The notes below the pieces were generated by a model that searched no databases, was not told where the DNA came from, and saw only the letters and a list, made by a program, of their open reading frames with translations. Both the position numbers and the translations under genes were made by a program. Positions 1,006-26,459 of a DNA stretch of 64,000 nt are shown here, one piece after another (position 1 is the first letter of the stretch; every line of letters begins with the position of its first letter). The DNA comes from Oopsacas minuta (Eukaryota > Animalia > Porifera), in NCBI GenBank assembly GCA_024704765.1, contig JAKMXF010000318.1, forward strand, positions 124,001 through 188,000, written 5' to 3'.

Positions 1006-4000
1006 ATGTATTTCTTATTTATCATTTTCCTGACCCTTCTCATTTCTGGGTTACATGGTGACGTGTACCCTAGTGAAGGTAGTCTAGGAGGTGGGACGAG
1101 GATCACTATTACTGGAGCAGAGTTTAGTACAGATATGTTCAACAGTCCTGGTACTAACACTTCTAATGGTAATATTGTTATAATGGAAAGTAACGATGAA
1201 CTGCCTTTATCCTGTGATTCAATTAATTATCTTTCTAATCCAATTCAGATAGTTTGTGTAACACACAATTCTGGACACAGTAAGTGCTTAGTGTATAGTT
1301 GCAATTTTCCTAATACTCATACAGCTGTAGCCAGATATTCAATGCTACAGTTTGGATATTAGAAAATTGCAAAATTTGCAATCATATATAAAGAAGTATC
1401 TCTTATATGTTTTGTTCTATTTTCTAACACAATTATCTAGGATAATACTAAAGTTACAATACAGAGATTAGGAAGTATGTATGTATACGTAGCTATCAAA
1501 TCGGATGGGTTTCGCTGAAAAACTTTGTAACTTTTATATCCTGTGACGTATGTATTTCTATCTGTTTATGTAGTAAGTGGTGATCACCAGTACAGCATCA
1601 GTGTAACCTCTGACGGAGCTACAGTCCCTGTATCAGGAACATTCACTTACAGAGATGGCCAGACTCCTATTATTACTGACGTCACCCCTCGCTACACGGC
1701 ACCAGGCTATCTTGTGAGTTTGTTTGGAATAATATATACTGACAAGTATATGAATACTAATGAAGAGACAGTTGATGAACATCAGCTGGAACGTGTTCAC
1801 CTTGGTCCTTCTACATGTGATCTATACCCTGATGATAGTCCTGATGAGTTGTACGGATTATCACTGGATGGAGATGATTTAACAACAGGACACTGTACAT
1901 GCAAGCCTCAAACTACTGATATAGGATCTTTCAATGCTAGTATGCTATTCTCTGGACCTAAAGGCAGGACTTTGATCAGTAAAGATGCACTACTTGTTGA
2001 TGCAGAGCTGAATACTTTCTTAGTGCAATACTACCCAGAAATTACAGGTATTACTCCGACAGTTGGTAGTATAGAGGGTAATACTTTGATTACAGTGAGT
2101 GGAAAATCCTTCCATGACATCCAGGATAATGTAAAGGTATTTATTGACCATTCAGAGTGTATGGTTGTTACTAGCAGTATTGATACGATTACATGTTTGA
2201 GCCCTGTTGGTGTAGGTGATAATAGTTTATACACAGGGCAACGGGGTTGGACATTGAACCTCTGGGAGACCACGGTAACCTCTATTGACCTAATAGACAG
2301 TTTAAACATAACTCTAAGTACCGTTTATTTGGTAGAAAATACTGATTCATATCCCAACATTACAGTCAGTCCGTATGTGATTAAATTATCAAGTTTTTTC
2401 ATAGCTCCACAGTCTGGACATTATACACTTACTACGTCATCTGGTAGACTTTATATTAACACTTCGCCTTATCCAGAATTGAATGACCATTTAATTTCTA
2501 TTCACAATGTTAAAATTGTATTGGAAAAAGGCTCGTATTATTATTTGTACGCTCTGGCTGAAAATACGTTACCTATAGTTAGTATTAAAATGGATGAAAC
2601 CGTGTTCGTGAATAGCATTTTGGGCTCTGCTAGCAATGAGCTACAAACTATTATAACTGATAATAATCCTTATGACGAATGGCTACGAGTATCTGTGCTA
2701 GATAGAAATGAAGGTAATGCTTCTATCCAGGAAATACATTTACCTGTAAATGCATTGGATGTTTGTTGTAATATTTCAGAGATTATTACTGTCAATGTCA
2801 CCTGTGAAGAGAATGTAACGGATTGTAATTCCACCATGGACACTTTTAATAATTATACAATATGTCATACGTCATCAATTGATATCATATATCAAGGTAA
2901 CTCTTCTACTTTTCTAATCAACAGCACTGAAGAGTTAATTAGAGATGAATTAAATTCTGCCAATTTCGCGATTTCCAATGCTGGAGGCGTTAATGTTAGT
3001 CTGATACAGAATAACACACATGTATCGATAATATTTTATTTCAGGGAGATAGGAAAGAGAGATACAATGGAGTTCAATTTATTACAAGCTAATTGTATGA
3101 ATAATGATACTTCTAGTGAGGCAATTACTGTATCAGTAATTTCACCAGGTCTTGATCCAGATAACACCTTTATCTTCATATATAATAACGTTAGATCAAA
3201 GCCTATTCCTTTCACAGCTGGTGAACAGCTGATTAAAACATATGTTGAAGATATGTTCATTAGGAAATGTGTGTATCCTAGAGGAGGGAAGTATTTACTG
3301 CAGGATTTTGAAGATGGTATAGGTTATATATCTGGTACACGTACAGGGACTTATGAACCGTTCTGTGGCAAGAGAGCTTTAAAAAACCCGAGATATCTGT
3401 TCAGAGTAAATCAAACTTATGCCAAGTCAAATGATGGTGACCCAGAACAATTAGATGAGTTTGATGCGAGAGTTTATAAGTATGTTTGTCTTGCTTATAG
3501 TGGGAATTTCCCTTCTAAAATGTATTTTGGCGTACGATGGCAAAATCTCAATCAAGATAGTATTTACAGTCATATTTCGATTGATTTGACTGTGTTTTCT
3601 GATAGCCCTTCAGAATTGATATTCAGATGTCAAAATATATTCGCTCAATTGTTATTAAATGAGGTTTTCGCAGATATATCTGATTCATCTGGTTACTCTA
3701 TTACTTATATACGTATATACCCAGGGAATAATGTTATCTATGTTGATGAAGTTGTTTTCTCTGAAAACTACTATTATTTACAAAGAGATGAAGCTAGGCC
3801 AGCTCGTCCTAGTGGAAACATATTTGTAGATACTACAGTTGTAGAAAATCTAATCCCGATGACTGAAAATGATTCTCTCAGTTTTGATTTACTATTCTCT
3901 ACATTTGAATGCGGACATAACTTCACATTGATTGAGGTGGCATACGAAGAATTTAACTCTCCAATAACTCAGTTTAATATCACTCGTATTCAACAGGCAT

Positions 4001-7000
4001 CACCACCTATACGTGGTTCTTTTACATTATCACAGAACGGTATATTAACACCAGAAATAGATGTACAAGCTACAGAAGATAATCTTAAACAGAGCCTTGA
4101 ATCGACGTTCGATGACGGAGAAATTCGAATTCATCGTGCTGGAGATTGTAGAGGATATGCATGGGATGTTGAATGGATACAATCAGGGGGAAATAAGCAA
4201 ATGATGGAAGTTAATGATGACAATGTTAGAGAATTTGGTGATGTATCAATTACCGTTGAAACTAAAAAGGATGGGTATCTGTACTTGACACATTTACCAG
4301 GTGACATGTTACGCAATACTCACGCGATTCCGCAGATATCTGTACTAGTGAACAACATACCAGCTTATTGTCCTATAGGAAACTGTGACTACCAATACAC
4401 TACAGACTCCACACCAATGATAACCAATGTCTCCCCTAACACTGGTTCTAATGGTACTGCAATTATGATCACCGGTACGATGTTTGGTACACAACCTGAA
4501 GGAGTATATGTATTAATTGGTGGTGATAACTGTAACCATGTGGATCTAGTATCTGGTACCAAAATATCATGTGTTCTACCCAGACATCAATGTGGTATTC
4601 TCCCGCTTAAAATCAATATTCCTATGTTAGGATTTTCCACTACACTTTCATTTGAATACACAATGACTGTTATTAGTTCTATTCCATCACAACTAAGCAC
4701 TACAGGAGGTACAGGGCTAATTATTAACGGGTATGACTTTGGAGATTCTATAACAGATACCTTAGTTACGATATCTTCAAAGGAATGTGTTGTTAATTAT
4801 ATAAATGACACGTATATCCAGTGTACTTCACCTGCGAATCCAGTTGGTTCATATTCCATTGTGTTGACTATACGAAATGTAACAGATGACAGTTTACAGG
4901 CGGAATACGTAGTAATGCTTTCACCTGTTATAACCAGCGTAGAGCCCAATACATTAAGTGCATGTGGTGATGAAATTACCATATTAGGTAATAACTTTGG
5001 CACTGAACTAAACTATATACAGATAATGGTAGGAGATATTGGCTGTGTAGATATTTCATTACAAAGTGATACACAAATGGTTTGTATTACACCACCACGT
5101 GAACCTGGTATGGCAATACTTACAGTTACACATTATTATACAGGTTCTGGTACATTCAATATTACGTATGTGTTAGTTATTGATAGCTTGACACCTTGGG
5201 TGGGGTCCTCATTGGGCGGGTCTATCCTCACATTCACTGGGCAAGGCTTTTGTTCATCTATTGATGACGTAATGGTTACGTTTTCAGATCCACGAGTTGA
5301 TTCATGCAATCCTCTATACGTGAATGACACTTACATACAGTGTAGAATATCCTCAACTTCTATACAGCATCTCATAGATAACACAGGTTATAGCAGTTTA
5401 TATGGTTATGGATACAATTGGAGTCCTAACAATATTACGATACAAAGTGGTGATACGGTTGTATGGAGCTGGAATGGTGCACAATTTATTGAATACCAAG
5501 TTGTACAAACGTATGAAAATGGTAGTGATTATATTGATGGGTTTATGAGTGAGATAAGCTCTGTAGGTACATTTTCTCATTGCTTCTATACTCCAGGAGT
5601 TTTCTATTACAGAAGTATAGAGCCTAGCATGATTGGAGTAATTTATATTACTGAATTGCCTTCTTTTATACCAGAATTTGAATTTACTGTTCATGGATTT
5701 TCTCCTTCAGCAGTTCCTTCCATACCTCAAAATTTGACATCTGTCATGATTAATAGTAATTGTACAGCTTCATTGCCTTCTATTGTCAATGACGCTGATC
5801 TACAGTTCATTTTCTGGAGCTGTAACACTGGGTTCATACGCTATGCAACTCCTTTACAGAGTTATTGGGAGGACTTAATACAAATCATAGGTGATAACTT
5901 TATGGATACACTACTGGAAATTTTGCTTGATGACGTATACCCCTGTGATGTAATCGATTTTAATAATACAGTAGCACAATGTAGGTTGAGACAAGATGCA
6001 CAAGTTCCATCTTGTATTACACTCCCTATAACTGTATCTTATGGTGCTTATGGTTATGCCTTACTTGCAGAGAAGAGTACTTATACACTTAAACCAACAA
6101 TTAGCAATATTTCTCCGTTATTAGGCTCTACTGAAGGTTGTCAGGAAATTACTATTTCTGGTTACGGTCTGAATAACGTAACTAGAGTATATATAAGTAA
6201 TGAATGCAAAATTGTTAGTAGAACTTACTATCAAATCGTGTGTATAACTAGTAGAACTAATGCTAGTAGTTATCCTATTATTATACAGACTTGTTTTGGG
6301 AATGAAACTTATACACATGAGTATGAATATTCAGTATCTAGTACACCGCAAGTTAACCAAATCTCCGTTACAGAGAGTGAGAACTATGCAGTGGTTGCCA
6401 TCTCAGGGAATTCATTCAACACAGTACAGCCAAATGACGTCATGATAGATATTGGAGGCATATCGTGTGTTGATATAATGTTCACTAATTCTGGTAATAC
6501 AATTGAATGTAAAGCTACACTGGCTGTAGGAGATTATTCAGTGTATGTAGCTGTACGTGAATTAGGTTGTGCTTCTATACCTAATAGTATTAATACTGTG
6601 ACCATCCATGGTGAAATCACGAGCTTTTCACCAACAGGAGGTAGCATAGAAGGTTGTACACGTCTCACTATATATGGATACGGATTTTCCTCTGGCTCAA
6701 CTGTAAATATGAATCCTAATATTGTCTGTGATGTAACTGCAATAACTTTCAATCAAATAAATTGTACTACTAGAAGCTCTAATTCAGGCACTAAGATACT
6801 GTCAGTACAGGGAAATGGAAGGACAATTACTTCTAGTACTAGTTTTGATTATTCTCAATCTTTTACTCCTACAATTACAAACATATCTCCTGATAATGGC
6901 CATGGGGGTGATATTGGTATTATCGGCTCTAACTTTGGTACAAGTATCTCAAGTGTGACAGTAAATATTGGTACAACTAATTGTATTATTTCAAGCATAA

Positions 7001-10000
7001 CCGAAACACATATTATGTGTCAACTGCCCTCTACATTGTCTGCTGGTACATACACGCCTCTAGTTACACGCTACAATTACGGGTGTTCTCAATCTAATAC
7101 AGTTTACGAATATACTCTCACAGTTGATGACGTAATGTTTGATAGCGCTATTCCAGGTAGAAACATACAGCTAACGGGATATGGATTTGATATCTTAGCT
7201 ACTGTAGTCACTATATGTGATTTACCGTGTTCCATATACAATTATACGTATTCATTATTACAATGTCGTGCACCGCCGAATCTAGATTATAACGACAAAA
7301 CTTGTAATATTATTATTGAGCATAACTCCCAGTCAGTTGCATTGGTTGATTCGTTTCATTACGTTACAGCACTGACGTCACAGGTTACAGCTGTTACTCC
7401 TTTTAGAGGAGGTACTGGAGGAGGTGTTGAGTTGATAATAATCGGTGAAGGATTCGGTACTGACCCAGACAGAATTATTGTGCTACTAGGTGACCTGTAT
7501 TGTGACGTAGTAAATGCTACTGATACAGAAATACGATGTATTACTCCCGTTAGCAGTAATACTATTATTGTACAAGTCGAAGTACATGTTGATGAGGAAG
7601 GTTACGCAAATTCAAGTGTTTATTTTCAATTTATTGACGTGTGGTCTTCTATTTATACTTGGGGCGGTGAGAGTACTCCTGTAGAAGGAGATTTCGTGGT
7701 TATCAGCCAGAATCAAACTATACTGCTTGATGTTACAACTCCTATTCTCTCATTCCTTCTCATACAAGGGAAATTGATTTTTGATGAAGTTGATCTTACT
7801 TTAAATACTGAATACATTTTAATCACAGATGGAGGTGTGTTGCAAGTTGGAAGTGAGGAAGAGTATTTTAAACATAAAGCTGTTGTTAGGATCCATGGCC
7901 ACGCTAGGAAACCAGAGTTACCTGTATATGGTGCTAAAGTGCTAGCTGTTAGAGATGGTACACTAGAATTACATGGTAAACCTATACCCATCACATGGAG
8001 TAGATTGAATAGCACCGCTAATATTAATGATACTGAGATTGTTGTAGAAGGTGAATTAGAATGCTGGGAAGTAGGCCATGAGATTATCATAGCTACAACT
8101 GGGTTTGGTCCTGTTGGCAATGAGAGAGTAGTAATAACTCATGTCAATATAACTGATGGTATAACTGTTCTAGGTATTGATCCACCATTACAGCATGAAC
8201 ATCTAAGTTTAACTATGTCAAATGGGAGAGAGGATTTACAATTGAAAGCTGAAGTTGGATTACTGACAAGGAATATCGTGTTTGAAGGCTCTGTTAATGA
8301 CGAATGGACTGAAGAAATACCAGCTTGTCCGCGTGATTTTGATCATGATCAGCATGCAACACAGACATGCTTCCAGGGCAGATTTGGTGAAGAGATTGGT
8401 AGCGATCAATTTGGTGCACACATCATGATACATTCCCATACACACCTAGCCCAAGCACGTATTGCGTATGTAGAAGTACGTCATGCTGGACAAGCATTTA
8501 GACTAGGTCGCTATCCAATACATTATCATATCAACGGTAATGTATCACACTCTTACGTCAGAGGTTGTGCTATACATGATACATTCAATCGTGCTGTCAC
8601 CATACACGCTGTACATAATCTATTAGTCGAGCATAATGTTGCTTACAATATAAAAGGGCATGCTTTCTTCCTGGAAGATGGTATTGAAACAGAGAATATT
8701 ATACAGCACAATTTAGCTGTGTTCGTCAGGTCATCTAGTAGCTTGTTAAATGTTGATGTTACCCCCGCGGCATATTGGATAACTAATCCGAATAATATTG
8801 TGTCATATAACGCAGCTGCTGGAGGCACTACATTCGGTTATTGGGTGCGGTTATCTGCACATCCAGAGGGGCCCAGTTTTGATCCTGACATATGTCCACG
8901 TAACGTTAGAGTACTAGAATTCACTGGTAATACTGCACATTCTTTTGGTCGCTATGGACTATGGATATTTCCAACTTACACACCCAAGCTACACGGTACT
9001 TGTGACTCAAATGTACCAGCTGTTGCTCTCTTCTCAGATTTCCTATCTTGGCATAACATGCGTGGAGCTGAGTCTACAGAAACTGGTGCAGTTCATTGGA
9101 GGAACTTTAATATGATTAGCAATGAGTTAGCTGGTATGGAAGTGACTATACCTAGTATTTGGCATACTTATGATACAGACGGTGGGCTTGTATATGATAG
9201 TTATGTAGCAGCTAGAATACCAGGAATTGAGGATAATTTCTGTTGCGTAGCTGGTATCAAAACTGGTCACAATTTGGGCTCTACATTTCGCAATATAACC
9301 TTTGCATATTTTGATCAGTCAAGTTGTAGTGCAATAGCTGGTTGTTCTCACTGTAAGGCAAGGCAAGGAGGATGGGAAGTTAGATGGTCAGAAGTTGAAT
9401 TTATCGCTTCTCCTTCTAAGCTAGCTTTTCTATGGGAGCACGAGACGGTACATGCAGATTTAGACGGGTCTATTACTGGACAGAACGGAACCTCTTATAT
9501 TGTACCGAGTATGGGTACCTTACCTGTTGATAAATGTACTATTGATGTATTTGCACTTTCAAAAGGTGATAATAATGGCAGTTATTGCTGGGACACTACG
9601 TTCAGGAGGATGGCTTGGAATAAACCTAAGCCAGAATCCCTGCTCTATGTAAATGCATTAGTTTCTAATAAATACGGAGCAAGTGTGATTCCTTTCAAGT
9701 TTAAGCGGTTAACACATCCTGATGGTTGGATGGCATTAATATTAGTGAATGAAGTGAATACGATAGCATTTGAAAATGTTTCACATGTAACGAATATTAG
9801 CTATGTAGCAGGCTTCTTTGAAATTAGGCCACAGGAAGATTTATGGATTAGACACAGTTTTGTACAAGCTCCGGATTTTCTGAGAATATTTGAAGATCAA
9901 GAAATGGCAGAAACTGATTATATACCACACAGACCTAATGTAACTCATGGTGATTGGCATTTTAACCATTCTTCATTAGATTTGTATTACATAGTCACAG

Positions 10001-13000
10001 GAATTGATTTAGTTACTCCAAGCAACTTGGCTACTGAATTATCAGTTTATCAGTGTTATTTCGCTGATTGCGTCATTCCAGTTCCCCCACCCCCACCCAC
10101 CGGGAGGCCACATGACTACAGACGTTGGAGTAATGCTACCGCTTGGATAGACTCAGAGTATGGAATTGAAGGACCCCCTGCAGATGGTGTTGACGTATTT
10201 ATACCACCTCATTGGTGGATGGTGATTGATATGCCGCTACCGGAAATTCGTAATTTAACCATACAAGGGGTGTTGGAGTTCGAGGATTATATTGACTATA
10301 CTTTGAACGTGACTTATATCGTAATTCTAGGTGAAAATGCTGGACTTTTCGCCGGTTTAAATGAGTCATTCACACACAATATTCATATAAGATTGAAAGG
10401 TGATCATAACACACCTGAATTAGTATACCCAGGTGCTCCTATTATCGGTTCTAAGGTCATTGCTAATTTTGGCATTTTACAGTTATGGGGTGTTGTCCCT
10501 GAAATTTCGTGGACGTTTGCCCGCTCAACTATCCATAAGAATACATTAACAATTATCCTCTCGGAGATTGTTGATTGGGGAATACATTTGGATATTCTCA
10601 TTACGTCATCATCATTTGATCACTACCAAACAGAAGTAGCTACTATACACTACATAGAAACAAAGAATAATGTATCATATATTTACGTTGAAGAACTAAT
10701 TCAATATACACATCATGTGGTTACAGGGTATACTGATAATGGTCTTGAGTATACGTTACGACCGGAAGTAGCTCTGTTACATCGTAATATTATCATTGAA
10801 GGCGTAGATGAACCTGTTGGCAGCGTTTCTATTAGGGATTTCGGAGCACGAGTATTAGCAAGTACAATCGAAATTGAGGATAAAACTCATGTTGCTAGAA
10901 CATTTCTTGAAGGGGTGAGGTTCTACCACGCGGGACAATACGGACATACAGATTCATATGACCCTAGATACTCTCTGGCATTTGTTAACTTAGGTACACC
11001 ACAAAAAAATTCATCATACATCCATTCGTGTGTATTTGATGATTCGAGGAGCACTGCTATTGGGGTTTTCAACTCCCATAACATTGAGATTATTGATAAT
11101 GTTATCTACGGTAGTGTAGGTGATTCTGTGATAATAGCTGGGGATAACATTGATATTGTACACAATCTAGTTGTACAAACTAAATTCCCTGTATACTTCT
11201 TAACTACTGTTACTTCAGGCTTACTCCCTCATGTAACTACTTTTGAGTTAACTAAAGCGAATGCTTTGAAACTTCAACGAAATTCTGCTGCTGGCTCTGA
11301 TTACATAGGATTCCATATTAATGGAGAACATTGTAATGAAATTGATCAGGACAGACAATGGTATGGGAATATAGCTCATTCTAATCTACACGGTATTCAT
11401 ATGTTATACGATGACGGTATTCCTTTCTGCACAAAAGTTTCTAATTTTATGGCATACCTAAACTGGGATTGGGGTGTCTTTACGTACACGAGGCAGCGTA
11501 TGGTGTTCAAGAACCTTATTCTTGTTGATAATCGCATTGGTTTACATGCTATAGTGTATGAGCCTAGAGCATTAGCGCATACTACTTCTAACAAATACAT
11601 TAGCGTGGATGACTGTTTGTTCATTGGTAATTCTGATGTTGAAAATTGTCGTAGTAATTTGTCTGAGCCGAGACATCTGTCACGGACAGGAAAGTGGAGG
11701 TCTTCGGCATCTGTTGACGGTGGGAATGTGGGGTTCACTTTGGCTACCTTCATGTCTGGAAAGGGTGCCGCTCCTAATAAACCATATGACAAGCTACTCA
11801 GTTATTCTACTATAAGTGGTCTTACACGTTTCAACCAGGTCACTTTTGCTAACTATCTAACTAGCTGTGGAGATAGAGCTATACAATCTCATCGTGCATC
11901 AGGTGATGCTATGCATCCTGTGGAAATACGGAATAGCCATAGATTTAATGTAGATCAAAATGCTACGTACTTTTTGTATAGACCTTTACTTAGCTGGGTT
12001 GATCCTTCTGATTGTGTTGATATGGATTGTGATGGACCTAAAAAAGTGTTGATTAAAATGTTGGATAATTCCTTCCTGGGGGAAATAAGCGAGGTGGTGG
12101 CACAATCTGAGTTTGAATGGGATGGAGACATGCGGAGGGGTCTAGGAGATTATCGTATTCCAATTTCAATGCAGACGAACAGTGATGGTAGCAGAGTTGA
12201 TATACTAAGTACATACCCATATAAGGGCATTTATCGTGATCAAGATTGTGTGTATAAAAAGGAATGGCAATCGTATTTGTGTCCCGGTACGAATCATGAT
12301 ATGATGATTATAGAGAGTTTAGATGCTGACACAGAGACTAGAAGGATTTCTCCTGTGGGTTTAGCTTCTGGGGAATTCATTGATCTTATTAATGGACCCA
12401 TGGACCATGGCTGGTGTCTCGGATACACATGTCAAGAACGTATATCTACTTTCTACACGATTGTACGAAACAGTTTGAACTATTCATTAGCTTTCACGGG
12501 CACGAATCCACAAGTACTTCGTGTGTTCTTATTAAATGTTGACGTCACTCGAGCAATTGTCGTTGGCTTATTCTACCCAAGCCCTCAACGTCTAGATGTG
12601 TATAACGAGGGTCGTTTCATTATACCAACAAACGCATATTTTATGGATGCGAACCTTAAATATGCTGATACACGCGATCCAGACATAAAAGCTCAATACG
12701 TACCGACTATAGATCTTCATCCAGGAGCTAATTTCTTTGACAGAGATAGTCTTACGATGTATTTTGTAGTGAAAGGCGATGCTAAAATTCAATTAGAGAC
12801 TACTATGATTATTCATTTGAGATTTGATCTAGCTTCTATTACTGTAGATGAATTCTTTGAAGAGAATATTGTGAATAATATCGCGCTTCTTCTCAACATT
12901 CCACCGTCCAGGATCCGTATCACTAAGATAGTCGGAATTCCAACGATAACTCGGCGACAAGTACAGTCAGTAGCAAATAATGTCTCACTTGAAATCGAGA

Positions 13001-13050
13001 TTGGTGATCCTCCTATGAACATTACAAGCTCTCTACCAAATGATAACTAT
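1006..13050 (+). other. PKHD1L1: Fibrocystin-L (PKHD1L1)-like region: IPT/TIG repeats, PA14-like segment, cupredoxin-like segment, two G8 domains with beta-helix repeats
   Basis: Repeated P-x-I-x-x-I-x-P-x-x-G-S-x-x-G-G-T-x-I-T-I-x-G IPT motifs. G8 domains start at WSSIYTWGG (~7640) and RRWSNATAW (~10120). Family-typical strings include GQAFRLGRYPIHYH, FLEDGIE, DCVDMDCDGPKK, GPMDHGWCLGYTCQER and DEFFEENIVNNIALLLNIP. Confidence 0.9.
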
Positions 13051-16000
13051 ACCTACATGCCGAATACTAGCAACCAAACCAGTATGGTTAATATGACTGT
13101 ACCTTCTACAGTGAATACAACAAATGCTTCAGGTCTATCTTATGAAGAATTATTGAATATTTCTAGTAGTGTAGTAGCTGTAGCTCAGTCAGGGGAATTA
13201 GAAGAAGCTATTGATGGTAATATTGATACTGTTACTGTAGCTAATCCATTGCCTTCTCCGGTTGGTGGTAATCTCACTGGGTTAAATGATACTGCACTTA
13301 ATAACACTGATCCGAACTATTTTGATAGTTTGGATCCGATCGAGTCAGAAAATGCTTCTTCAATCGAGTTTTTAATATACAAAGTTCCTGAGACTTTGTA
13401 TTTATTTCAAGCACCATTAGACTCGAATGAAACTGTTCCATTAGGCCAGCAACCTCTCCTATTTATAGCTGACGAGAACAACCAAATCGTATCTAGTTTG
13501 AAACATGTAATGAGTGAACCTTGGAGATTAACAGTGTCTCTCCATGCTGGTTACGGAGATCCTGATGCTGTTATTAGCGGTAGCACTACAGTAGATTTTG
13601 TTCAGGGATGGGCGAATTTCACTGATATAGCCATTTCTCATTTCGGGAATTATAAATTAGATTTCAATATCACGACCCCAAATAGTAATCTAACGATATC
13701 TTCTGATTTTCTACAAGTTAAAGAGCGTATTATTATACTGAATATTATTACGCATGTAAGCAATACGAATGAGACTGTTGTATTCCTTCCGGCTCCATTG
13801 ATTGAGCTAATTGATATTGGCAATGGAGAACGTGTGCTTAATCATAACTGGAAAGGTTGGGATTGGGTGACTAATGTAACGCTTATCTCTCATTCAGGCT
13901 ATGGGGAGTTTATTGGAGATGTTGATAGAAATTTTACACTTGGTTTAGTCGAGTTTACTGATCTATCGATTCACTCAGATGGCAATTATTCAATAATATA
14001 TGACGTATATACAATTCCTTCATCAAACTACAGTCTCACTGTAACACATAAAAACCTTATTATAAAAGAGAGGAAGTTTTATTTAACAATTGATACACAG
14101 CCTAGTGATTGTAATGAGACTGTGGTATGTGGGAATCAGCCTGTAATAAGCATTAGAGATCAAGGTAATGGGCAGATAGTACAGAACATTGGTTGGAAAG
14201 GTAGAGTTTGGGAACTTAATACAATTCTTTACACAAATAGTAATCAACAATTCCAGCTTAATGGTACTCTCAGTCATCTCATAAACGGTACAGGTAATGT
14301 TGTGTTCGAAGATTTAAGAGTTTTTGACATTGGAAGTGACTTCTATATATATTTTAACATATCAACTTATCCAGTATCTAGCTATGACGGTATGATGATA
14401 AATACGAGTAGATTCGATGTGAATGAACGGGTGTATTATTTGAAGGTTGATATTGTACCATTTGATTGTAACCAGTCTGTTGTTTGTGCGGTATCTCCAC
14501 ATGTGGGTGTTTACGATTATGGTACAGGACTAATCGCACCGTATTTGAATAGCAGCTGGGAAATATCTGTGTCAATTGATTATGACCCTTCTATACGTGG
14601 TGGAGATATTCTGGGGTATAGTACTACAACTTTAAACAACTCTATCGCGATTTTTAACAACTTTTCTGTATCAGAATATGGTGAAGGTTATGTAATACGT
14701 TTTAACTCTAACTTTGGCCATAATGTACTGTCAATTGATTTCGATGTTGATTACGTAAATGACCACACTCCTATATTCCTCCTCCCTTCTTTAAACACGA
14801 TTTCAATATTTGAGGAGAATACCACTAATATAACTGTTACTACATTCTATGCTACTGATCGAGATCAAGGCTCACAAGGCGATGTTGCTTACTCTATACA
14901 TTCTATGACGCCTGTTGTAAATGGAGTTTTTGCTATCAATAATACCAATGGTAACTTATCATTGCTATCTCCGCTAGATAGAGAAATGTTCTCATTTCCT
15001 GTGATCAGTAATTATGAGTTAGTTATACGAGCATCTGATTTAGCTTATCCTGAGAAAGTTAAATTTGCTGATATTACATACACTATAGTTATTCTGGATA
15101 TTAATGATAATGTTCCTACTAGTCAATTTCCAAATTACATGCTAGATTGTCGTGAAGATTTGGTAAATGGAGATGTTGTTGAAACTATTAACGCTTATGA
15201 TCTTGATGATGGTATTAACAGTGAGATCAAGTTTTCTCTTGTAGCAGATGGTGTTGATCATTTGCTGTTTGATATCGATCCTATACTTGGCGGGATATAC
15301 GTGAAGAATGAATCCCTACTCGATTTTGATACCAATTCTCATCCGGATGGAACAGAATACAATTATTTTCTGTATGTTACTGATCTAGGTACTCCTCCAT
15401 TGGTTTCTAATTCTACAGTAAGCATCACCCTACAACATGTGAATGAGTTCTTCCCTGTATTCGATAACCTCACTGACTATTCCTTTAGTTTTGCTGAGGA
15501 GAATAATAGTACTTTATTCGTGACACAAGTATCTGCTACAGATGATGACTTTGGTAATGAAGGTGCAGTCGAATTCAGATTGCCAAGCTACACTGATATA
15601 TTTTCTATTGGACAGACAGATGGAAATATTACTATTACAGGTAAGTTTTAATTGTAAATAATTCTTAATGAGTTATGTTACCATGGAAACATAATTCATA
15701 GTTCAATAAACTTTACTATTGTCAATTATCCCCCGTATATATTTCCTTTTTAGGAAGACTTGACTATGAACAAGCTACGTTTTACGATCTCATTGTAGAA
15801 GCTTATGATTACCCTAACGTGAATCCACCTAATGGATTTCCAGGTAGGAAAACTACAGAGTTGCATTTATCCATAAATTTGATTGATATTAACGATAATG
15901 CTCCTCAATTCGTTTCCCCTGATGCTACCGTTAATCTATTGGAAGATCATATTATGTATGCAAATGTTTACGAAGTAATATCATTTGACATTGACTCAGA

Positions 16001-19000
16001 TTTGAATGGGGAATTACGTTATGAGATCCTACAAACTTTTCCAACTGATAATAATATAACATACTTGGAAATTAATCCCGATACTGGAGTTATTCATCTC
16101 AATCATTCACTCGATCTTGACTCGGTTGCTGTCCCTATTGAAACTATAGTATTGTCAATTATTGTCACAGATAAAGGTACTCCATCGCTCTATAATAGCA
16201 CAACTCTTACGATCTTTATTGAACAAGTTGATGAATTTATACCCGAATTCGTTCACGGAGATATTTCAGTAAATATTTTTGAAAATCAACCTCTATCACA
16301 AGTACTATTCAATGCAAATGCGACTGATTCGGACCATGGATTGGGAGGAGAATTCGAATATGAAAAGAGAAATGGGTTGGGTTTTCTTTCAGTATTTAAC
16401 CTTGATACATTAACTGGTGCTGTAACTTCTACTATACAATTCGATAGGGAAACTAAAGATTCATACTCTTTTACATTAGCTGTACAAACTAGGTCAAATA
16501 ATCCTGTTACGAGATCATCTACTATTGAGGTATTTATAACTATTCTAGATGTTAATGATAACTTCCCAGTGTTCCAGGAAACTCTATATACAATATACAT
16601 CACTGAGAATACTATGGTTAATTCTGATATCTATCAAATAACCGCTACTGATAGAGATATTAATCTTAATGCTAATCTACAATACGAATTATACCATGAA
16701 AATTCTCCTGATGTATTCCTGATTGATATGCTGACAGGTGCCATCAGTTTGACACTTGATCTTAATCTAGAAGCTCCCGCGGTTGTTCTACCGTCAGCTG
16801 AGACTTTTAACTTAACAATAACCGCATTTGACAGGAGTGAGAGCCCACTATTCACGAATACCACGATTTTAGTAGTTATCACAGGTGTAAATGAATTCTC
16901 ACCCATTTTTGCAAATACACCAGATCAGCTGTTTCCAGAAGACACTCCTACAATTGCTCTATTCACTGTATCAGCTACTGACCAAGATTACGGACCTCAA
17001 GGTGTTATAACATATAGTATAATAGCTGGTAATAATGAAGGTAAATTTGGTATCTCATCTAGCAATGGGGAAGTAAGGTTGGTCGAGGAATTAGATCGGG
17101 AAACGGTTGATAATTATAATCTTGAAATTCTGGCCCTGGATAATGATGCTGATATTTCTTCACGTAGAAATGATACAATTCGTATTGGAATTACTTTAGA
17201 AGATGTGAATGATAATAGACCGATCATACAACAAACTAGCTGTATATTGTCTATACCAGAGAATACTGTAGTTGGATCTAACTTGTTTAATATATCAGCA
17301 ACAGATGATGACATCACAATTAACTCAGAAATAGAATACCTCTTGACATATCCTGAATTTTCTATTGATTCAAACACGGGGGTTGTTGAGCTATCATCTC
17401 CAGTTGACTATGAATCTGTAGAATCTCATATTATATACCTAAGTGCGAAAGATAAAGGTTCCCCAAGTCTAACCTCTGAAGTACTAACCTGCTTCATTTC
17501 TATAACTGGTTTCAATGAATATGAACCTCAATTCCAACAAAATAACTACACATTTGCTTTCGAAGAGAATTCACCTATTAACACAATGATAGGGCTTGTA
17601 GAAGCTACTGATGCAGATAATGGTATTGATGGTCTAATTACATATAGTGTAGTTGAAGTTGATAGTCGTTTTAGAGTTGATGATAACGGTGGAGTGATAG
17701 TTTTCGGTTTTTTCGATCGTGAGGTTGACGTATCCCCTATTTTAATAACAATTTCCGCAGTAGATGCACCTGGAGGTCCTATACGCTACACAGCATACAC
17801 TAATGTCTCAATTACCATACTGGATATTAATGATAATTTTCCAATATTCACTACTAATCATCAATACGAATCTCTCCCTGAGAATACACCAGTTACTACA
17901 AGCATAGCCCAGTTCACTGCTACTGATATAGACATAGGTCTCAATAGCCAGATTCGTTATTATATTCCCCCGGGTGATTTTGCTGTTGACCCCCTATCTG
18001 GAGTCGTGTCAGTACACAATTTCTTAGACAGAGAAATGAATGCTTATTATACAATACAAATATCAGCTGTTGATCAGGGCTTTCCAGGTAATACTGCTTT
18101 AGCTATTCTTGTTGTTAATATTGATGACGTCAATGATAATCCTCCTATATTCACTGAATATAATTACACGGTAATTGTGGAAGAAGATACACCAGTTAGT
18201 TCTATTATCTTGACTGTACAGGCTGTTGATATAGATTTTGGTTCCAATAGTGTGGTTATGTATTCTATAGTGTCTCAATCAGCTGATTATTTTGAAGTAG
18301 AATCAAGTATTGGCGCTATTACACTCAAAAGGACATTAACTGGAGCTGATGATATGTATAATATAACTGTAAGAGCTACAGATCTCGGTTTAATGCCATT
18401 ATCATCAACAGCTGATATTATGGTATACATCACACCCACTAATAAATACCCTCCTGTATTTACCTCACCTGATAACTATACTGTATATATTCAAGAGAAT
18501 ATACTGTATTCTGATACTATCTTATCTGTAACAGCTGTTGATCTAGATGAAGGCATCCTCGGACAAGTTGAATATTCTATTCTAACTGATTACACATTTC
18601 TACATATTAATACGAATAATGGTAGTATTACGCTATTGAGTGCGTTAGATAGTGAGTTGTATAGAGATGGTATTATATTTCAAGTTCAAGCTAATGATCT
18701 AGCAGCTGCTGAATATCGCAAGTATTCACTCGCTAATGTAATTCTTATCGTTTTAGATGTAAATGATAATTCCCCATACTTTCCTCATACACATTATTCT
18801 ATCTTAATACCATCTGATCTCGGTTATAGTGATGTCATCTATTTATCTGCTATAGATAGAGATATTGGGATTAATTCTGAGTTTACCTATAGTTTGTCTG
18901 GAGATGTTTGCTATTTCTATACAGACACCATGGATGGAGGCGTGTTTTATAACGGACAAATACTCCAAGTTAACCAGGAGTATCATCTAGTTTTGACTGC

Positions 19001-22000
19001 TACAGATCATGGTAGCCCTTCACTCTCAAATAAGACTGATGTTACTATTAAAGTCTTACAGAGTAATTACTATTCTCCTATTTTCATAGCTCCACCAGGA
19101 CGAATTTATATTCCAGAAGATTTGGGTGTAGCTGAACTTGTCTATCAATTTGAAACATTTGACTTTGACATTGGAGACTCTGCTATTATTGAGTACTACA
19201 TTTCAACAGGGAATACTCATGAAGTATTCGATATTTCTAATGATGGAGCTTTGTTCCTCAAAACTTCACTCGATTTTGAAGAAATGAACTTATATACTTT
19301 GACTATTCTAGCATATAACCCAGGTAATCTATTCGAATACAGATATTCTGATATTTCTGTTGATATTATCATTGAAGATATTAACGATATTATTCCTGAA
19401 TTTTCTCTCACTAATTATACATTTATATTCGCTTCAAATTTCCAATCAGGTAATCCAATTGGTACAGTTTTTATTATTGATGACGTAATAAGATCAACTA
19501 GCCTTTCTCCTTATACAATTATATCTGATCCATTTATTTTCACAATCTCTGAGGATGGTGTTATCAGATTAACAGAAGACTTTGGGCTGAATTTTGTTAG
19601 TGAATATTCTATAGAAATATCGTATAATGATGGGATATATACTGCTACAGCTTTAGTGACGATTTTTGTAGAAGAACCTAATTTGTACTCTCCATTATTC
19701 TCCAATTCAAACGGTTCATTTAACATTCTAGAGAATAATTATTTTACTGATGTATTACTGATAACAGCAACTGATAATGATATAGGAGCTAATGCAGAAA
19801 TTTCTTATACTATTACAGATAATTATTATATCTCTATTGATCAAAGTAGTGGTGTTCTAACCCTTGTTAATTTATTTGATTATGAACAGATACAAATATT
19901 GAGTTTGGTGATAACTGCGGAAGATAACGCTTCACCCTGGCAACGAAAATCCACTACATTTCCTGTTGAAATAGTAGTTTTAGACGAGAACGATTCTCCA
20001 GCTATTTTCGCAGAACCTACCTACATATTTACAGTAGAAAATAATACAATTGTTGCTGGTATTATTGGTAGAATAATTGCAACTGATGCGGATATATCCT
20101 CAACTCTTTTATACCAATTCACCACGACTAGTGATTACTTCGATATAGACCCATTCACTGGAGATATATTTGTAGCAAAGGAATTGGTTATTCAGAGTCC
20201 AACTATTACTGTATCAGTAAACGACTCTATACACACAGATAGTGCAATCGTGATTATTAACATCATTCCAGCCAATTTACATACCCCAATATTTCCCCAA
20301 CATAATTACACTGTATCTATACCAGAAGGAACTTCAATTGGAAATTCTATTCTACAAACAAATGCTGTTGATATGGATACTGGTATCAATGGGGATATTA
20401 CATACAGTATTTCGTATAATCTAACGGGTGAATTATTGTATAGTGAATTCTACTACGGGTATGATTGTATTAACTCAGTCATTAGATGCTGAAACAGATC
20501 CAGCAGAAATTTCGTTTGACATAACAGCAACAGATAATGCTTATTCTTCTTTCCGTAAATCTAGCTCTGTAACTGTTATTATACAAATTGAAAATGTGAA
20601 CGATAGATCACCAGAATTTTCACATCCTATTTATCAGCTGTTTGTAGAAGATGGCACTGATAGATACGTGAATATTTACAAGGTTGAAGCTATTGATAAA
20701 GACGGAGATACTCTATCGTACACGATATTATCCGGTGATATTGACCAAGTTTTTAGTATCAACTCTATTACTGGAATACTCTTCCTGAATACAGTACCAT
20801 ATGCTGACGTTAATCCCTTATACAACCTGAGGATACAGGCTTCTGATCTTGGAGGTAATTTCGCTATTGCATCATTTGAAATACGTATTATCCCTAGGAA
20901 CATGCAAGCACCTGAATTCTCTGAACAAATTTACTATTTTGAGCATTTCCATGTTGTTAATATTGGTGGAGTTATTGGTCGTATTTCTGCAACAGATTTA
21001 GACACAGGGAATGAAGGCAGTGTATCTTATAGTATAATCTCTCAATCAAGTGATGCATTCGTTCTGAATCATATCACAGGTGTGATACAGCTGTTTAGAT
21101 CAGCTGATTATAATAATTATACTATTCTAGCTCAGGCGTGTGATAATGCTGTTTCTACATACAAATTGTGTACCAATACGACAGTTCAAATAGAAATACA
21201 ACAAATAGAAGATGAGTATGTTATTCAGCCTGTTAGTCTATCTCATACGTTTGAATTAACTGATATTAACCAAAATATTTCATTTAACGCTTTTCAAATC
21301 AGTCTTAATTCCTCGATTTTATACACAGAAAATATCGACATAGAACTTCTAACTTGTGTTTCAAATTTGATGTTCGACTACCGACTTAGTTTCCCATTTA
21401 TTGAAGTTATATTAATCCAAACTGACGTCATAACAGATCCCTTACAAACCCAGCTAAGAGTAATTATCAATAATTCTACGTTTTCAATCACTACAATCAA
21501 CCTATTGCCTCAACATAACATCACTATACCTACATTTTCAGATGATACTTACTACATTCACGTATCACATAATCACCAAGTTGGAAGTCTCGTATCTATG
21601 GTAACTTTGGATTTCCCACCTTTTGAGAGAGTATTATATCAACTTGCTAGTGGTAACGAAGATTCAGTATTCTCAATAGATTCTGATACAGGTAGTATAT
21701 ATCTGTATGCAGAATTATCAGATACACACCCTCTATACACACTCTCACTCGTAGCTAGATTATTCTACGTCACGAACTCTCCTATATTTGTTGAAGTTAA
21801 AACTACACTGTATATAATAGTACAAGAGATAATATCTAACATAATACAGCCTTCATTATCATTACCATATTTTAATCCGATTGTTACATATCCTAACAAC
21901 GTGTGGAGCATAAATGGAACGTTTGAATTCATTGGAGATACGTTTAACTTGGAATTATTAAGATTTCCTAATGAACTGAACCAGATACAGGTTTCTTTTG

Positions 22001-25000
22001 GTAATGTTAATATCTCAATTGATTCAGGCATTTATTATGATGTATACTACTCTCATCTACCTAACACTCATATCTGGTCTAATCAACCCATATTTCAACT
22101 GATAATATTTAAGTTTAACGCTCTTGTCGTCGACGAAACAAGTATAACTCTACACATATTCTCTCAAACTTATACATCACCATTTATTGATGGAATTTCT
22201 TCATTCATGATCGACATCCCTGGTTCTGAATTTGATATTATGAACGGTGATGTTGAAGTTCCATTTATTGTTAATTCATTCAACGGAATAATTACTTTAA
22301 CACTCTCTAAAGTTAATGAATACACACAGCCAAATTTATATATCCAACTTCCTTCTAATACCGCATATTCTACTGATAAGTTTGCGCTACCTCTATATAC
22401 AAGGAATTTCATATCACCCCTAACTACCTTTGAAATACTATTTGACATTTCAAATAGTTTGAATTTTATTTCATTCACTCCAGCTCCTGACTGGACTGTA
22501 TTCTCAAAAGCTGATACAAGCACTGTATTATTATATGGTGTAAATGACGTCATCCTCAATTCATCATTTACTACCAGCACTGATCTTATAGGACACTTTG
22601 TGTTAGAACAAACTCAAGGGGTAACACATGCATCTGCCACATTAACTACTGATATCAAACTTCTCACAAATACTGTAGGGGTAATTAGTGATGGAATCGG
22701 TTATGCAGATTTTATCTACACTGATGTTCTATCTAGAATTGCTACTTTATCTTTAAAACCTGATTCAACAGAGAAATTATTCTCGTTTATTCATCAGAAA
22801 GATGTTCTAGAAATTTCTAATATCCTACAAGATACCTCATCCATAATTGATCTAGGAATAACTGCTATTGCTATTTCTTTCTCTGGGAAAGTAGATCGAT
22901 TAGACAATACTCAAATACAATGCTCAATTATCTCAGAAAATTTATATTTCATAAATTCTACTTGTAATGAGCTACACATTGGGAGTGCGAATTTCGCAGA
23001 ACACTTAGAGATCACCATAACGTATGATAACATAATAGACACTCAGTATGTCGATGTATGGGCTATTCAACAAATCAGTATAATCACAGATTCTAATGTT
23101 CTGAATCCTATTTCTTCGTGGTTGAATCACAATTGTGAACAAATATACGAATGGACAAAATTCACTATACAAAGTATTATTGTTAATAAGAATTCAGAAT
23201 CCAGAATAATTGAAATTACCAAACAATTGATTGAATACTTACTCTATAACCATCAAGTTATTTCAATCATTCCATTCGATCCTAGTTTCTATTTACAGCC
23301 AAAGAATCCGACACTACAGCATACTACAGTCAGTGTAACCTTAGATGTACAAGTAGATTCTATTTCTATGGTTCCCTTATTGTTAATATTCTCAAATGAG
23401 TATTCTTATATAACTGGGGTATCTTCTTTGATTGTTTCAGATATAAACTATTCAATAAATAGCAGTGAGGAAAATATTGATAATTTAAGTTTAACTGTTG
23501 ATTCAACTCTTACACACAATCATAGGGTAGGTTCTCTTCAAAGCTCTGTTATACTTGATAATTCTACGTTTATTGATTATATTTTCGGCCCTGAATACCT
23601 TCATGTTATTCCAGTGGATCCTTCCAAGTTATCTGTTAACAGGGATATGCTACCTGAAATTAGTTCGTATCTTCATTTCACTTCGATTTCCTCCGATGTT
23701 TTATTGGTTCTCAGTAACATAGGAGCTTGTGGAGGGAATGTGCTTTATTCCACAAATAAACAGGTTGATATTATCCAAACTCTTCCCTCTTCTGTGCGGA
23801 TAGAAGTAGGCCATACACGTTTATCCTTATTTAACTCTCTGACTAACTTGCCATCTACAACTACGATTCATTTATTAGGTACTTTCCCTCAGCTAATACA
23901 GTCTTATATTGATATTACTGCTGTCAATGTCATTCATAATGATATCCAGATAAACTCTGTCAATTCTCAAATTCATTTGAAAATCATTGATCAGGATTTA
24001 TTGATTATACCAAATATAATTGATGGAAGTATTAGCGTTAGCGGCTCTAATACATTTGGTAATGTAGCGGTAGAAATATACGTAGATACAGAATTATTAG
24101 ATTCTCTTCTTATTAGTGTTGTGTATGAGTCCACGCTTGAGATTGTAGCTATTTCGACCTATACTGGAGATATATTGCAATACTTGCCTAAAATCGGTTC
24201 AACTACTTTTGAACCTTTCTATGTTAGAGGGATTTTAAGATTTGAAGATGATTCAGTTTTGTATGTAACTTTAGATAGTTATGACATCTTGTCAGATAGT
24301 AATTCTCTTCTTTGTGATTCACAAAATATATGTACTCTAACCATGGATGACATTTCTAACTATATTACTATTACAGGGAGTTATCGTACTCTATCTGCTA
24401 GCTATAATCTAAACTTGATTCCTTCTCCTGTCATTAAATCGCTGCAAATACAATTCTATGACAATAATGATATTCCTATCAATAACGTGTTTTATGGAGA
24501 GGAAGGGAGTTACTTCTATATTTCCTTAGTATTCTGTTTCCAAGGTTTATCAGGTACTTATCATTTGAATTCTAATAATCTATCGTATTTCTCAGAATCT
24601 CTGACTATATCTAGTAGTGATATAGCTGTTATTTCACAGAATAACAGCACTATATTACTTGATGGGGGTTGTAATAGTGTATTAGTTACCATTAACTTCT
24701 TCTCTAACGTTTCTACACATACGTTTGTATGTAATTATCTTCCATCAGCTGGGTATCCACATCTTGGTCATATTGTCGGTGCTTCCCTGGATAAGCCAAT
24801 TTCTTCTCTGTATACTATACCTTTATACTTCCATTTTGAAGATGAACAATCTATTGCTTTTGATATTTTAATTCAATTCAACACTGATGAATTGACTTTT
24901 TCACATTTAACAAAGTCTATGGATTTCTCTATTAGCAATCCCACCCCATATGGAGATGTGTTTTTACTCAATTCATTGACTAATTCATCACTACACATTG

Positions 25001-26295
25001 GAGTATTATCAAATTCTGCGATTCAATCAGGCTATATTAAAATAGCAGATCTCTCATTCAACCTAGCATCTACACTAATTATTCCCTCCATTAGTATTCA
25101 GTCTCATTCTTTAGTTAAACTGGATGACGTCATACAGACAGATAGTACTAATCTTATTGGAGATATAAACAGTGATAATGAGATAGACATAGGAGATTTG
25201 TTGATTTTATCTCATAATATATCTGAACATCACCTTACTGGCGACAACATAGAGTTAAATATGAATGACGTCACTGCAGATGGTGTGGTTAACTTCGAAG
25301 ATTTTCGTCGATTATTTTCCTCGCATTTCGGTGTTTTACCTTTACCAGTTTTATATGAAACCTTCAATTCCACTAACGCATGCCATCTCTCTATCAGAGT
25401 TGAGTTATCAGACATACAACACTCTCCTTACACACAATTCGATACAGTTAAAGTATATATGGGATTATTCACTACATCTGATCTATCTGATTACACTAAT
25501 TGGGAATTGAGTATAGGTTCATTCGTATCTCAAACTTATACTGGTGGAATCAGCTTAATTGTATTTGAAGCGAGTCCTGAATCAAATACATCTCTCTATA
25601 CCGTCAGTACTGATCTATTTCTCCCGATTTCTATCACTACACAAGTATTTATCTACTTACGTTCCTCACGGTCTCTTCCTCCTATTTCCAGCTTATTTTC
25701 TATACAAGATCATAGTAGTTATTCAGAACCTATATCTACTGGTGGTATTACTTTATTGACACCAGATGGTGATCTACTGCCTCTCCCATCCAAGCTACAC
25801 GGTTTAGACACTATACGTGATGAGTGTAGTAGTGATCCTACTGTATCACCTATAGTAAGGATACTTCTAATTGCAGGGACACCTTCATTAGCCTTCATTA
25901 TCATTATTCTAATTATCGTATTTACGATATTACTTATCGTTTGTTTGGTTTATAAGAAGAAGAATGTAGCCAAAGTGAAGATACAAAATATAGAGGATGC
26001 GGAGAAAGAGACCTTACGTGAGTCGGTTGATTCTGAACATCAGTTATACCGTGGTTTGACCTATTACCCTGATCCGTCAGAGGCACACGCTCTCTCTCGT
26101 TCACCTTCTTCTTTTAAGAACACTACATACGAGAATCCTGTTGGTATATCAGGGCATTTCCTGTCTGATCCTGATGATACTGCTTCTGGTGAGTATATAG
26201 ACGGTAGTCTGAATATATCTCATAAAGTTAGCTCTACTTCTGGAGTACATCCTCTGATACAGGAATCTCTGCCTGGTACACCTAAAAAGAACTAA
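1006..26295 (+). CDS. Giant type I membrane protein (~8,290 aa): fibrocystin-L ectodomain + 4 Ig-like repeats + ~20-22 cadherin repeats + cohesin/TMEM132-like region + dockerin + TM + short tail
   Basis: Exon model 1006-1279, 1574-15640, 15754-26295. Intron 1280-1573 is GTAAGT..ATGTAG. Intron 15641-15753 is GTAAGT..TTTTAG and restores the cadherin motif ITG|RLDYE. The signal peptide is MYFLFIIFLTLLISGLHG. Joining the ORFs needs removal of 1 nt near 20430; the total is then 24,882 nt = 8,293 aa + stop. There is a single TM (ILLIAG...IVCLVYKKK) near 25860-25960. Confidence 0.8.
14750..21820 (+). other. Cadherin repeat array (~20 clear repeats plus ~2 degenerate)
   Basis: Recurrent PE/xE, A-x-D-x-D, LDRE/LDYE and D-x-N-D-N-x-P-x-F motifs at ~105-110 aa spacing across ORFs 1543, 15819 and 20428. 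Confidence 0.95.
24750..25335 (+). other. Cohesin-like domain followed immediately by a type I dockerin-like domain
   Basis: The dockerin shows two duplicated Ca-binding loops, GDINSDNEIDIGD and NDVTADGVVNFED, each followed by a helix (25153-25335). The preceding beta-rich segment (YTIPLYFHF...FDILIQFNTDELTF...KIADLSF) fits a cohesin fold. An earlier cohesin-like segment lies at ~22320-22700. Confidence 0.7.
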
Positions 26296-26459
26296 TAAAT
26301 AGCAAAATACATTAGTTTACTGTAGGACTTACTTTTACGAATCTTTTTACTTTTTACTACTTCGATAATTATTTATTTATTTCCCTCTTTCTCTATCGTA
26401 TTCTATATACTGAATGTTTACAAAATTGGCTATTTTGCTTGTAGAACTTTCAATTAGAA

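Follow-up and report, generated by a model that had tools for sequence, protein, structure and literature searches.

The stretch of DNA considered here (hereafter the window: 64,000 nucleotides, positions 124001-188000 of contig C318 in the 61.5-Mb, 365-contig assembly of the glass sponge Oopsacas minuta, which is also the genome that was searched) carries on its + strand one gene of ~8,200 codons that holds two cohesin-like segments, a TMEM132-like stretch and a dockerin. It is predicted to encode a giant coherin-type protein of the cell surface, with type I orientation, whose membrane-proximal half would consist, in this order, of cadherin repeats, a TMEM132-type module, a cohesin with a dockerin behind it, a domain without a name, a membrane helix and a conserved tail. 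Cohesin-dockerin pairs are among the strongest protein contacts, and we lean, by a modest degree, towards the reading that in this coherin-type cadherin the dockerin would clasp the cohesin that precedes it in the same chain. The presence of cohesin and dockerin relatives in cis on an animal surface protein, which an initial annotation of the window had proposed, is borne out by a Dockerin_1 match above the Pfam cut-off and by a family profile that leads to PF00963-bearing relatives.

The role of animal cohesin domains has been open since they were found in choanoflagellate and sponge cadherins, the coherins, and then in human TMEM132; dockerin homologues were not detectable in vertebrate proteins, and the partner of the cohesin was left open (PMC6030884). 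The newness that the initial annotation had seen in such modules on an animal protein is reduced to that extent by earlier publication. New here are the variant of the pair without a cut site, a third gene with the cohesin-dockerin cassette and the corrected gene model, all described below. In the sponge, a cohesin and its own dockerin follow every TMEM132-type module, which provides a concrete and testable candidate for the missing partner.

Residues are numbered in a 1955-codon open frame at 20428-26295, in which residue n begins at 20428+3(n-1) and which holds both cohesin-like segments and the dockerin. The features that lie downstream of the cadherin repeats are as follows.

22324-22737, + strand: first cohesin-like module, putatively of the TMEM132 third-domain type, residues 633-770 (profile match to the relative P0027, language-model features, hhalign)
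22795-23097, + strand: immunoglobulin (Ig)-like domain with a TMEM132 fourth-domain match, residues ~790-890 (alignment to PF16070 of P0027; relatives)
24745-25122, + strand: second, predicted cohesin module of the PF00963 type, residues 1440-1565 (family profile, language-model features, fold matches)
25123-25158, + strand: short linker of ~12 residues, without a polybasic site (alignment of 21 cassettes, motif scan)
25159-25335, + strand: predicted type I dockerin, two calcium loops each with a helix after it (Pfam, profile searches of the Protein Data Bank (PDB), VIA, predicted helices)
25345-25797, + strand: unnamed domain after the dockerin (X), residues 1640-1790 (cassette alignment; matches no Pfam family)
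25861-25953, + strand: transmembrane helix, then KKK (sequence)
25954-26295, + strand: cytoplasmic tail of 113 residues, then the stop codon (per-domain identity among orthologues)

A type I dockerin with both calcium loops

The segment at 25159-25335 is soundly predicted to be a type I dockerin. Its Pfam Dockerin_1 (PF00404) score is 27.6 bits in the whole frame and 36.4 bits when the 63 residues are taken by themselves, both above the cut-off of 22.9. EF-hand_7 reaches 21.7 bits on the segment, less than the 36.4 bits of Dockerin_1. The order is reversed in two ordinary EF-hand proteins of the same genome that served as controls, for which EF-hand_7 gives 96-121 bits and Dockerin 26-29. The Dockerin_1 cut-off is thus passed, at 26-29 bits, by these two calmodulin-like proteins, at C33:315838-315972 and C266:238837-238998; because the family cross-matches EF-hand proteins, a near-threshold match in a eukaryote needs an EF-hand control.

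Both 12-residue calcium loops are retained, DINSDNEIDIGD at 25162-25197 and DVTADGVVNFED at 25267-25302, where the initial annotation had placed them. The acidic or polar ligands at loop positions 1, 3, 5, 9 and 12 are present, a helix is predicted after each loop, and in the alignment all calcium ligands are kept in this species and in both orthologues. When cassette profiles were run against all PDB sequences, solved dockerins ranked above calmodulins, with best E-values of 3.3e-7 and 1.5e-11 and calmodulins starting at ~3e-3. The dockerin part of the AlphaFold2 model reaches a predicted local distance difference test (pLDDT) value of ~60-74, and its comparison with solved type I dockerins by VIA yields Z-scores of 7.5-9.6, with 52-61 superposed residues that deviate by 1.1-3.5 A (root mean square) and are 24-29% identical; all of its top 14 structural matches are dockerins.

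A generic EF-hand pair, named at the outset as the result that would overturn the dockerin assignment, is ruled out as the identity of this segment by the score reversal in the controls, by the PDB ranking, in which solved dockerins outrank calmodulins, and by the structural matches. The wider form of that explanation, a chance resemblance in which such a pair is flanked by unrelated beta-sandwiches, draws on the two true EF-hand proteins that Dockerin_1 matches above its cut-off and on the low confidence of the structure models; it has to contend with the precedence of Dockerin over EF-hand here and the reverse in the controls, with 14 of 14 best structural matches being dockerins, and with relatives that bear Pfam Cohesin at the aligned position, and its probability appears negligible.

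The probable cohesin adjoining the dockerin

Residues 1440-1565, directly upstream of the dockerin, probably form a divergent cohesin, for which the support is good but indirect. The initial alignment joined the segment with its two orthologues and two paralogous cassettes, and a word search with a paralogue added distant relatives. The profile built from these five rows matches the relative P0027 at residues 2283-2607 with 71.8 bits (independent E-value 1.6e-22, calculated on a small local set) and a second time at 515-811 with 57.4 bits. P0027 itself is matched by Pfam Cohesin (PF00963) at 67 bits, with its best stretch at 2311-2415, and shows a weak dockerin at 715-780. Among 21 aligned cassettes, 6 have a PF00963 match of their own (best E-value 4.5e-12) and 11 have one to Dockerin_1.

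Language-model features also cluster the segment with cohesins (score 0.94; 29 of 30 matches in the Cohesin set). The AlphaFold2 model has a pLDDT of 30-58 in this part, and the fold matches that follow from it are therefore supportive only: solved cohesins account for ~15 of the best 40 Foldseek matches, and VIA places cohesins at Z-scores of 6.0-6.3 over 108-114 residues, with unrelated sandwiches at 5.5-5.9.

The putative TMEM132-type module and the first cohesin-like segment

The initial annotation had placed a TMEM132-like stretch between two cohesin-like segments, and this arrangement is probably correct, with weaker support for the first segment. A profile of residues 575-960 and two orthologues matches P0027 at residues 1492-1817 with 44 bits, the best score with reversed sequences being 3.4 bits. 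In that stretch P0027 carries PF23039, the cohesin-like third domain of TMEM132, at 23 bits (cut-off 27), followed by Ig_TMEM132_4th (PF16070) at 84 bits. The latter family is found in 8 of 11 aligned relatives of the TMEM132-like stretch and PF23039 in none of the 11; the direct Pfam match of the stretch itself is to PF16070 at an E-value of 0.24 only, and a PDB sequence search with its alignment gave no useful match.

The language-model features of the first segment resemble those of the second (score 0.92; 29 of 30 matches in the Cohesin set), and hhalign relates the two cohesin-like families with 84% probability and an E-value of 7e-6. With its default filters, jackhmmer retrieved orthologues alone for the first segment, and unfiltered hmmsearch reached P0027. 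The segment at 22324-22737 would thus represent the cohesin-like third domain of a TMEM132 module, an assignment with weaker support than that of the second segment. Coherin, lefftyrin and hedgling cadherins are all published as having the TMEM132 module, whose conserved region, cohesin and three Ig-like domains follow one another alike in each of them (PMC6030884), and the succession of the first segment and Ig_TMEM132_4th would agree with that order.

One gene across an apparent frame break

Three long frames lie on the + strand, the 1955-codon frame and two upstream of it. The first of these (1543-15651, 4702 residues) contains 10 TIG/IPT domains, two G8 domains and CEMIP beta-helices, then cadherin repeats, and the second (15819-20492) contains 14 cadherin repeats, all according to Pfam. 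Near 20428-20492 the second frame overlaps the third in a different reading phase. Read-derived contigs from one sample (three public sequencing runs) and from a second organism (one run) were placed on 20350-26300, and bases 20421-20430 are missing at full depth from every read-derived contig that covers them (X1, X2, X3 and also X5). The frame break is therefore an assembly artefact and the gene is intact. Once the ten bases are removed, the cadherin motif is continuous (ITYSISYNNYCIVNSTTGMIVLTQSLDAE), and a local translation stays open for 8209 codons between 1543 and the stop codon at 26295. Database searches covered the exons and frames one by one. A 16-nucleotide GT..AG intron at the break was also considered, and it is ruled out by the reads, which reveal a 10-base insertion in the assembly.

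The absence of the ten bases from the reads makes the cohesin-dockerin region continuous with the cadherin ectodomain; the apparent separation of an adhesive ectodomain from its anchor was an assembly error. Cadherin repeats, a cohesin and a membrane anchor are thus present in one protein, the combination by which coherins are reportedly defined. The features upstream of the TMEM132-type module are the following.

1543-15640, + strand: large exon with a fibrocystin-like head (10 TIG/IPT, 2 G8, CEMIP beta-helices) and the first cadherin repeats (Pfam; GT donor at the exon end)
15641-15753, + strand: intron of 113 nucleotides, GT..AG, inside a cadherin repeat (sequence; frame and cadherin motif run on across the joint)
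14800-21760, + strand: cadherin array of at least 18 repeats, across the intron and the false frame break (Pfam Cadherin)
20421-20430, + strand: ten surplus assembly bases (missing in all read-derived contigs)

The fusion of a fibrocystin/PKHD1-like head that runs directly into cadherin repeats (1543-15640) is unusual. At the other end of the protein, the dockerin was initially described as sitting near the membrane, which is imprecise: the helix at 25861-25953 lies ~175 residues further on and the unnamed domain stands between. This unnamed domain is kept in all cassettes, where an LP(F/L) motif and then a cysteine mark its start, and a Pfam search with it matched no family.

The modules of the gene are 48-70% identical to those of the two orthologues, and the tail is the best conserved part (74% and 55%). 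Conservation of the modules among three species implies that the gene is under selection and not decaying, and that of the tail suggests a conserved intracellular partner. The tail (25954-26292) carries the motifs YRGLTYYPDPSE, ISHKVSS and ESLPGTPKK, and no family was matched there. A broad search of representative sequences with the 1141-residue C-terminal ectodomain yielded six relatives only.

Cassettes across the genome

When the cassette profile was run against the entire assembly, it recovered, besides truncated 3'-end copies on C57 and C177 (see below), five full cassettes: three on contig C322, one in the present gene on C318 and one on C111, in a protein named Lefftyrin by NCBI. In each of the five, the cohesin stands directly before the dockerin and the same unnamed domain follows. 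The dockerins of the genome are confined to these three genes, all of which encode membrane proteins; Dockerin_1 has five genome-wide matches, of which two are the calmodulin-like EF-hand proteins. No lone dockerin, secreted dockerin-bearing protein or free PF00963-type cohesin was found in whole-genome searches with Pfam Dockerin_1, PF00963 and the cassette profile, and PF00963 matched nowhere in the genome at E-values up to 1.

The docking of secreted dockerin-bearing partners onto the cohesins, as in a cellulosome-like scaffold, had been among the possibilities raised in the initial annotation, and the genome speaks against it. The analogy with bacterial scaffoldins and the presence of two cohesin-like modules for one dockerin in the chain are what such a scaffold has in its favour; searches with Dockerin_1 and with the cassette profile, however, returned no dockerin outside the three cassette genes, barring cross-matches to cytosolic EF-hand proteins, and a scaffold of this kind must be regarded as very improbable. 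What tells most strongly against such a scaffold, and in favour of an internal pair whose members are dedicated to each other, is the one-to-one adjacency of the modules. Among the functions first proposed, an intramolecular latch accords best with the evidence, since each dockerin of the genome comes directly after a cohesin of its own.

The loop between cohesin and dockerin

Of the 21 aligned cassettes, 18 have a long connection of 45-60 residues between the two modules, with two conserved polybasic motifs of furin type, G-x-RRRS and R-x-RR, as well as conserved cysteines. In the present gene and its orthologues P0002 and P0007, the connection measures ~12 residues and has no basic motif. 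The sole RxxR between residues 500 and 1830 is RSSR at residue 1745, which is not conserved. The C322 and C111 cassettes share the whole-length alignment and the following domain with the present gene at ~20% identity, and differ from it in the 45-60-residue loop with RRRS, RxRR and cysteines. The coexistence of paralogues that would be cuttable and a present gene that would not amounts to a natural experiment on the purpose of the pair.

On C322, positions 240001-275000 contain three repeats of a unit made of cadherins, a TMEM132-type module, a cohesin, a polybasic loop, a dockerin and an X domain, a layout common to five hexactinellid-like relatives of ~3,900 residues (P0021-P0025).

The shortness of the linker bears on how the pair could meet. 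Dockerin and cohesin could pair between molecules, neighbouring copies or the C322 and C111 proteins joining head to tail to form chains or cross-links on or between membranes. With ~12 residues here as against 45-60 in relatives, folding back would be hindered; cassettes that look compatible exist in three genes, and the chain has a second cohesin-like module further upstream. All cassettes nevertheless keep their two modules adjacent and strictly one to one, as would be expected of a dedicated internal pair, and the genome search uncovered neither a free dockerin nor a free PF00963-type cohesin. Pairing between molecules consequently seems rather unlikely to us.

The loss of the cut-site loop in this lineage can also be taken to mean that a holding function is no longer needed. 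The modules would then be inherited folds that do not bind, the dockerin acting as a calcium-stabilised spacer and the cohesins as plain beta-sandwich domains of the stalk. The drift of the cohesin below Pfam detection is in keeping with this. Bacterial type I dockerins use a Ser-Thr pair at their recognition positions, and the residues at these positions in the sponge dockerin differ from that pair. The calcium ligands, on the other hand, are kept, and both modules are 52-64% identical over three species, like the rest of the ectodomain, and we hold the loss of binding to be doubtful.

A proposed calcium-dependent clasp in the stalk

According to the intramolecular reading, the dockerin would fold on calcium and would bind the cohesin that immediately precedes it in its own chain. 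The two would form a clasp that depends on calcium and sits in the stalk, with ~175 residues between it and the membrane. In the paralogues, furin-type sites in the loop would allow the chain to be cut, and the clasp would hold the cut pieces together. In the present gene, the short loop could not be cut and the clasp would stay covalently tethered; such a tethered clasp may be a rigid joint or else a force-opened latch.

Several points limit the case for this clasp or weigh against it. Neither cohesin-like segment has a direct PF00963 match in Pfam at E-values up to 10. The AlphaFold2 model of cohesin, dockerin and X made from the five-row alignment had a mean pLDDT of 40 and was set aside, and that made from a 16-row alignment, from which P0026, P0027 and P0028 were left out, reached 51.5; with both models this poor, the interface cannot be read from them. 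With a linker of 12 residues, the dockerin may also fail to reach the binding face of the cohesin, which would favour binding between molecules. A complex prediction with cohesin, dockerin and two calcium ions scored 0.02, a value that counts neither for nor against binding.

A more far-reaching extension of the intramolecular clasp can be put forward, although we consider it rather unlikely. The missing partner of the animal cohesin would lie in the same chain, and early-branching animals would keep a cohesin-dockerin clasp behind every TMEM132-type module. In this lineage, a clasp of the cut-and-hold kind would have become a tethered latch that cannot be cut and that opens only under load, a force-gated extension or sensor in the giant fibrocystin-cadherin hybrid of a syncytial sponge.

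Relation to known systems

Like the coherins, the present protein is a giant cadherin with a cohesin and, putatively, the five-domain TMEM132 module in the same order; unlike them, it adds a fibrocystin-like TIG/G8/beta-helix head. With vertebrate TMEM132 it would have in common a cohesin-like domain and, after it, Ig-like domains, as well as a membrane helix and a tail that is conserved (PMC6030884), whereas the dockerin and the second cohesin after the module are additions of the sponge chain. In the papers covered, a dockerin beside the cohesin is not mentioned, and PMC6030884 was the only one with a bearing on a dockerin in these proteins; Nichols et al. (2012) lay outside the search, as did Peer et al. 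(2009), and either may already have noted a dockerin in coherins.

The likeness to bacterial type I cohesin-dockerin pairs (1OHZ, 2VN5, 6KGC) resides in the two-loop dockerin with its helices, at the identity and Z-scores given above (24-29%, Z up to 9.6). The best fold matches of the sponge cohesin, obtained with a low-confidence model, are likewise cellulosomal cohesins. In the sponge, unlike in bacterial cellulosomes, both modules belong to the same polypeptide, a membrane protein of an animal, in which they are neighbours in a one-to-one ratio; the genome search found neither enzyme-borne dockerins nor a multi-cohesin scaffoldin, and binding is a prediction in the sponge.

The Notch heterodimerisation domain, GAIN and SEA belong to receptors that are cut and then held together non-covalently. 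The cut-and-hold principle proposed for the C322 and C111 paralogues, that is, ectodomain cleavage together with a strong domain contact, would resemble theirs. The folds are unrelated, and the present gene has no cut site, so that the analogy extends at most to the paralogues.

Copies and fragments of the gene

The 3' end of the gene (25255-26295) is copied with ~90% identity at C57:16044, C177:628352 and C177:699720. These copies start halfway through the dockerin, in its second calcium loop, and take in the membrane helix and the tail; the one on C57 lies downstream of frames rich in epidermal growth factor (EGF) domains. They carry hypothetical-protein annotations (P0003, KAI6655785.1 and others). 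P0004 (KAI6659481.1) is a ~92% identical fragment of ~21340-22650 with an internal deletion. Among the read-derived contigs, matching joints from 21937 to 23082 and from 23746 to 26244 probably stem from rearranged paralogous copies of this kind.

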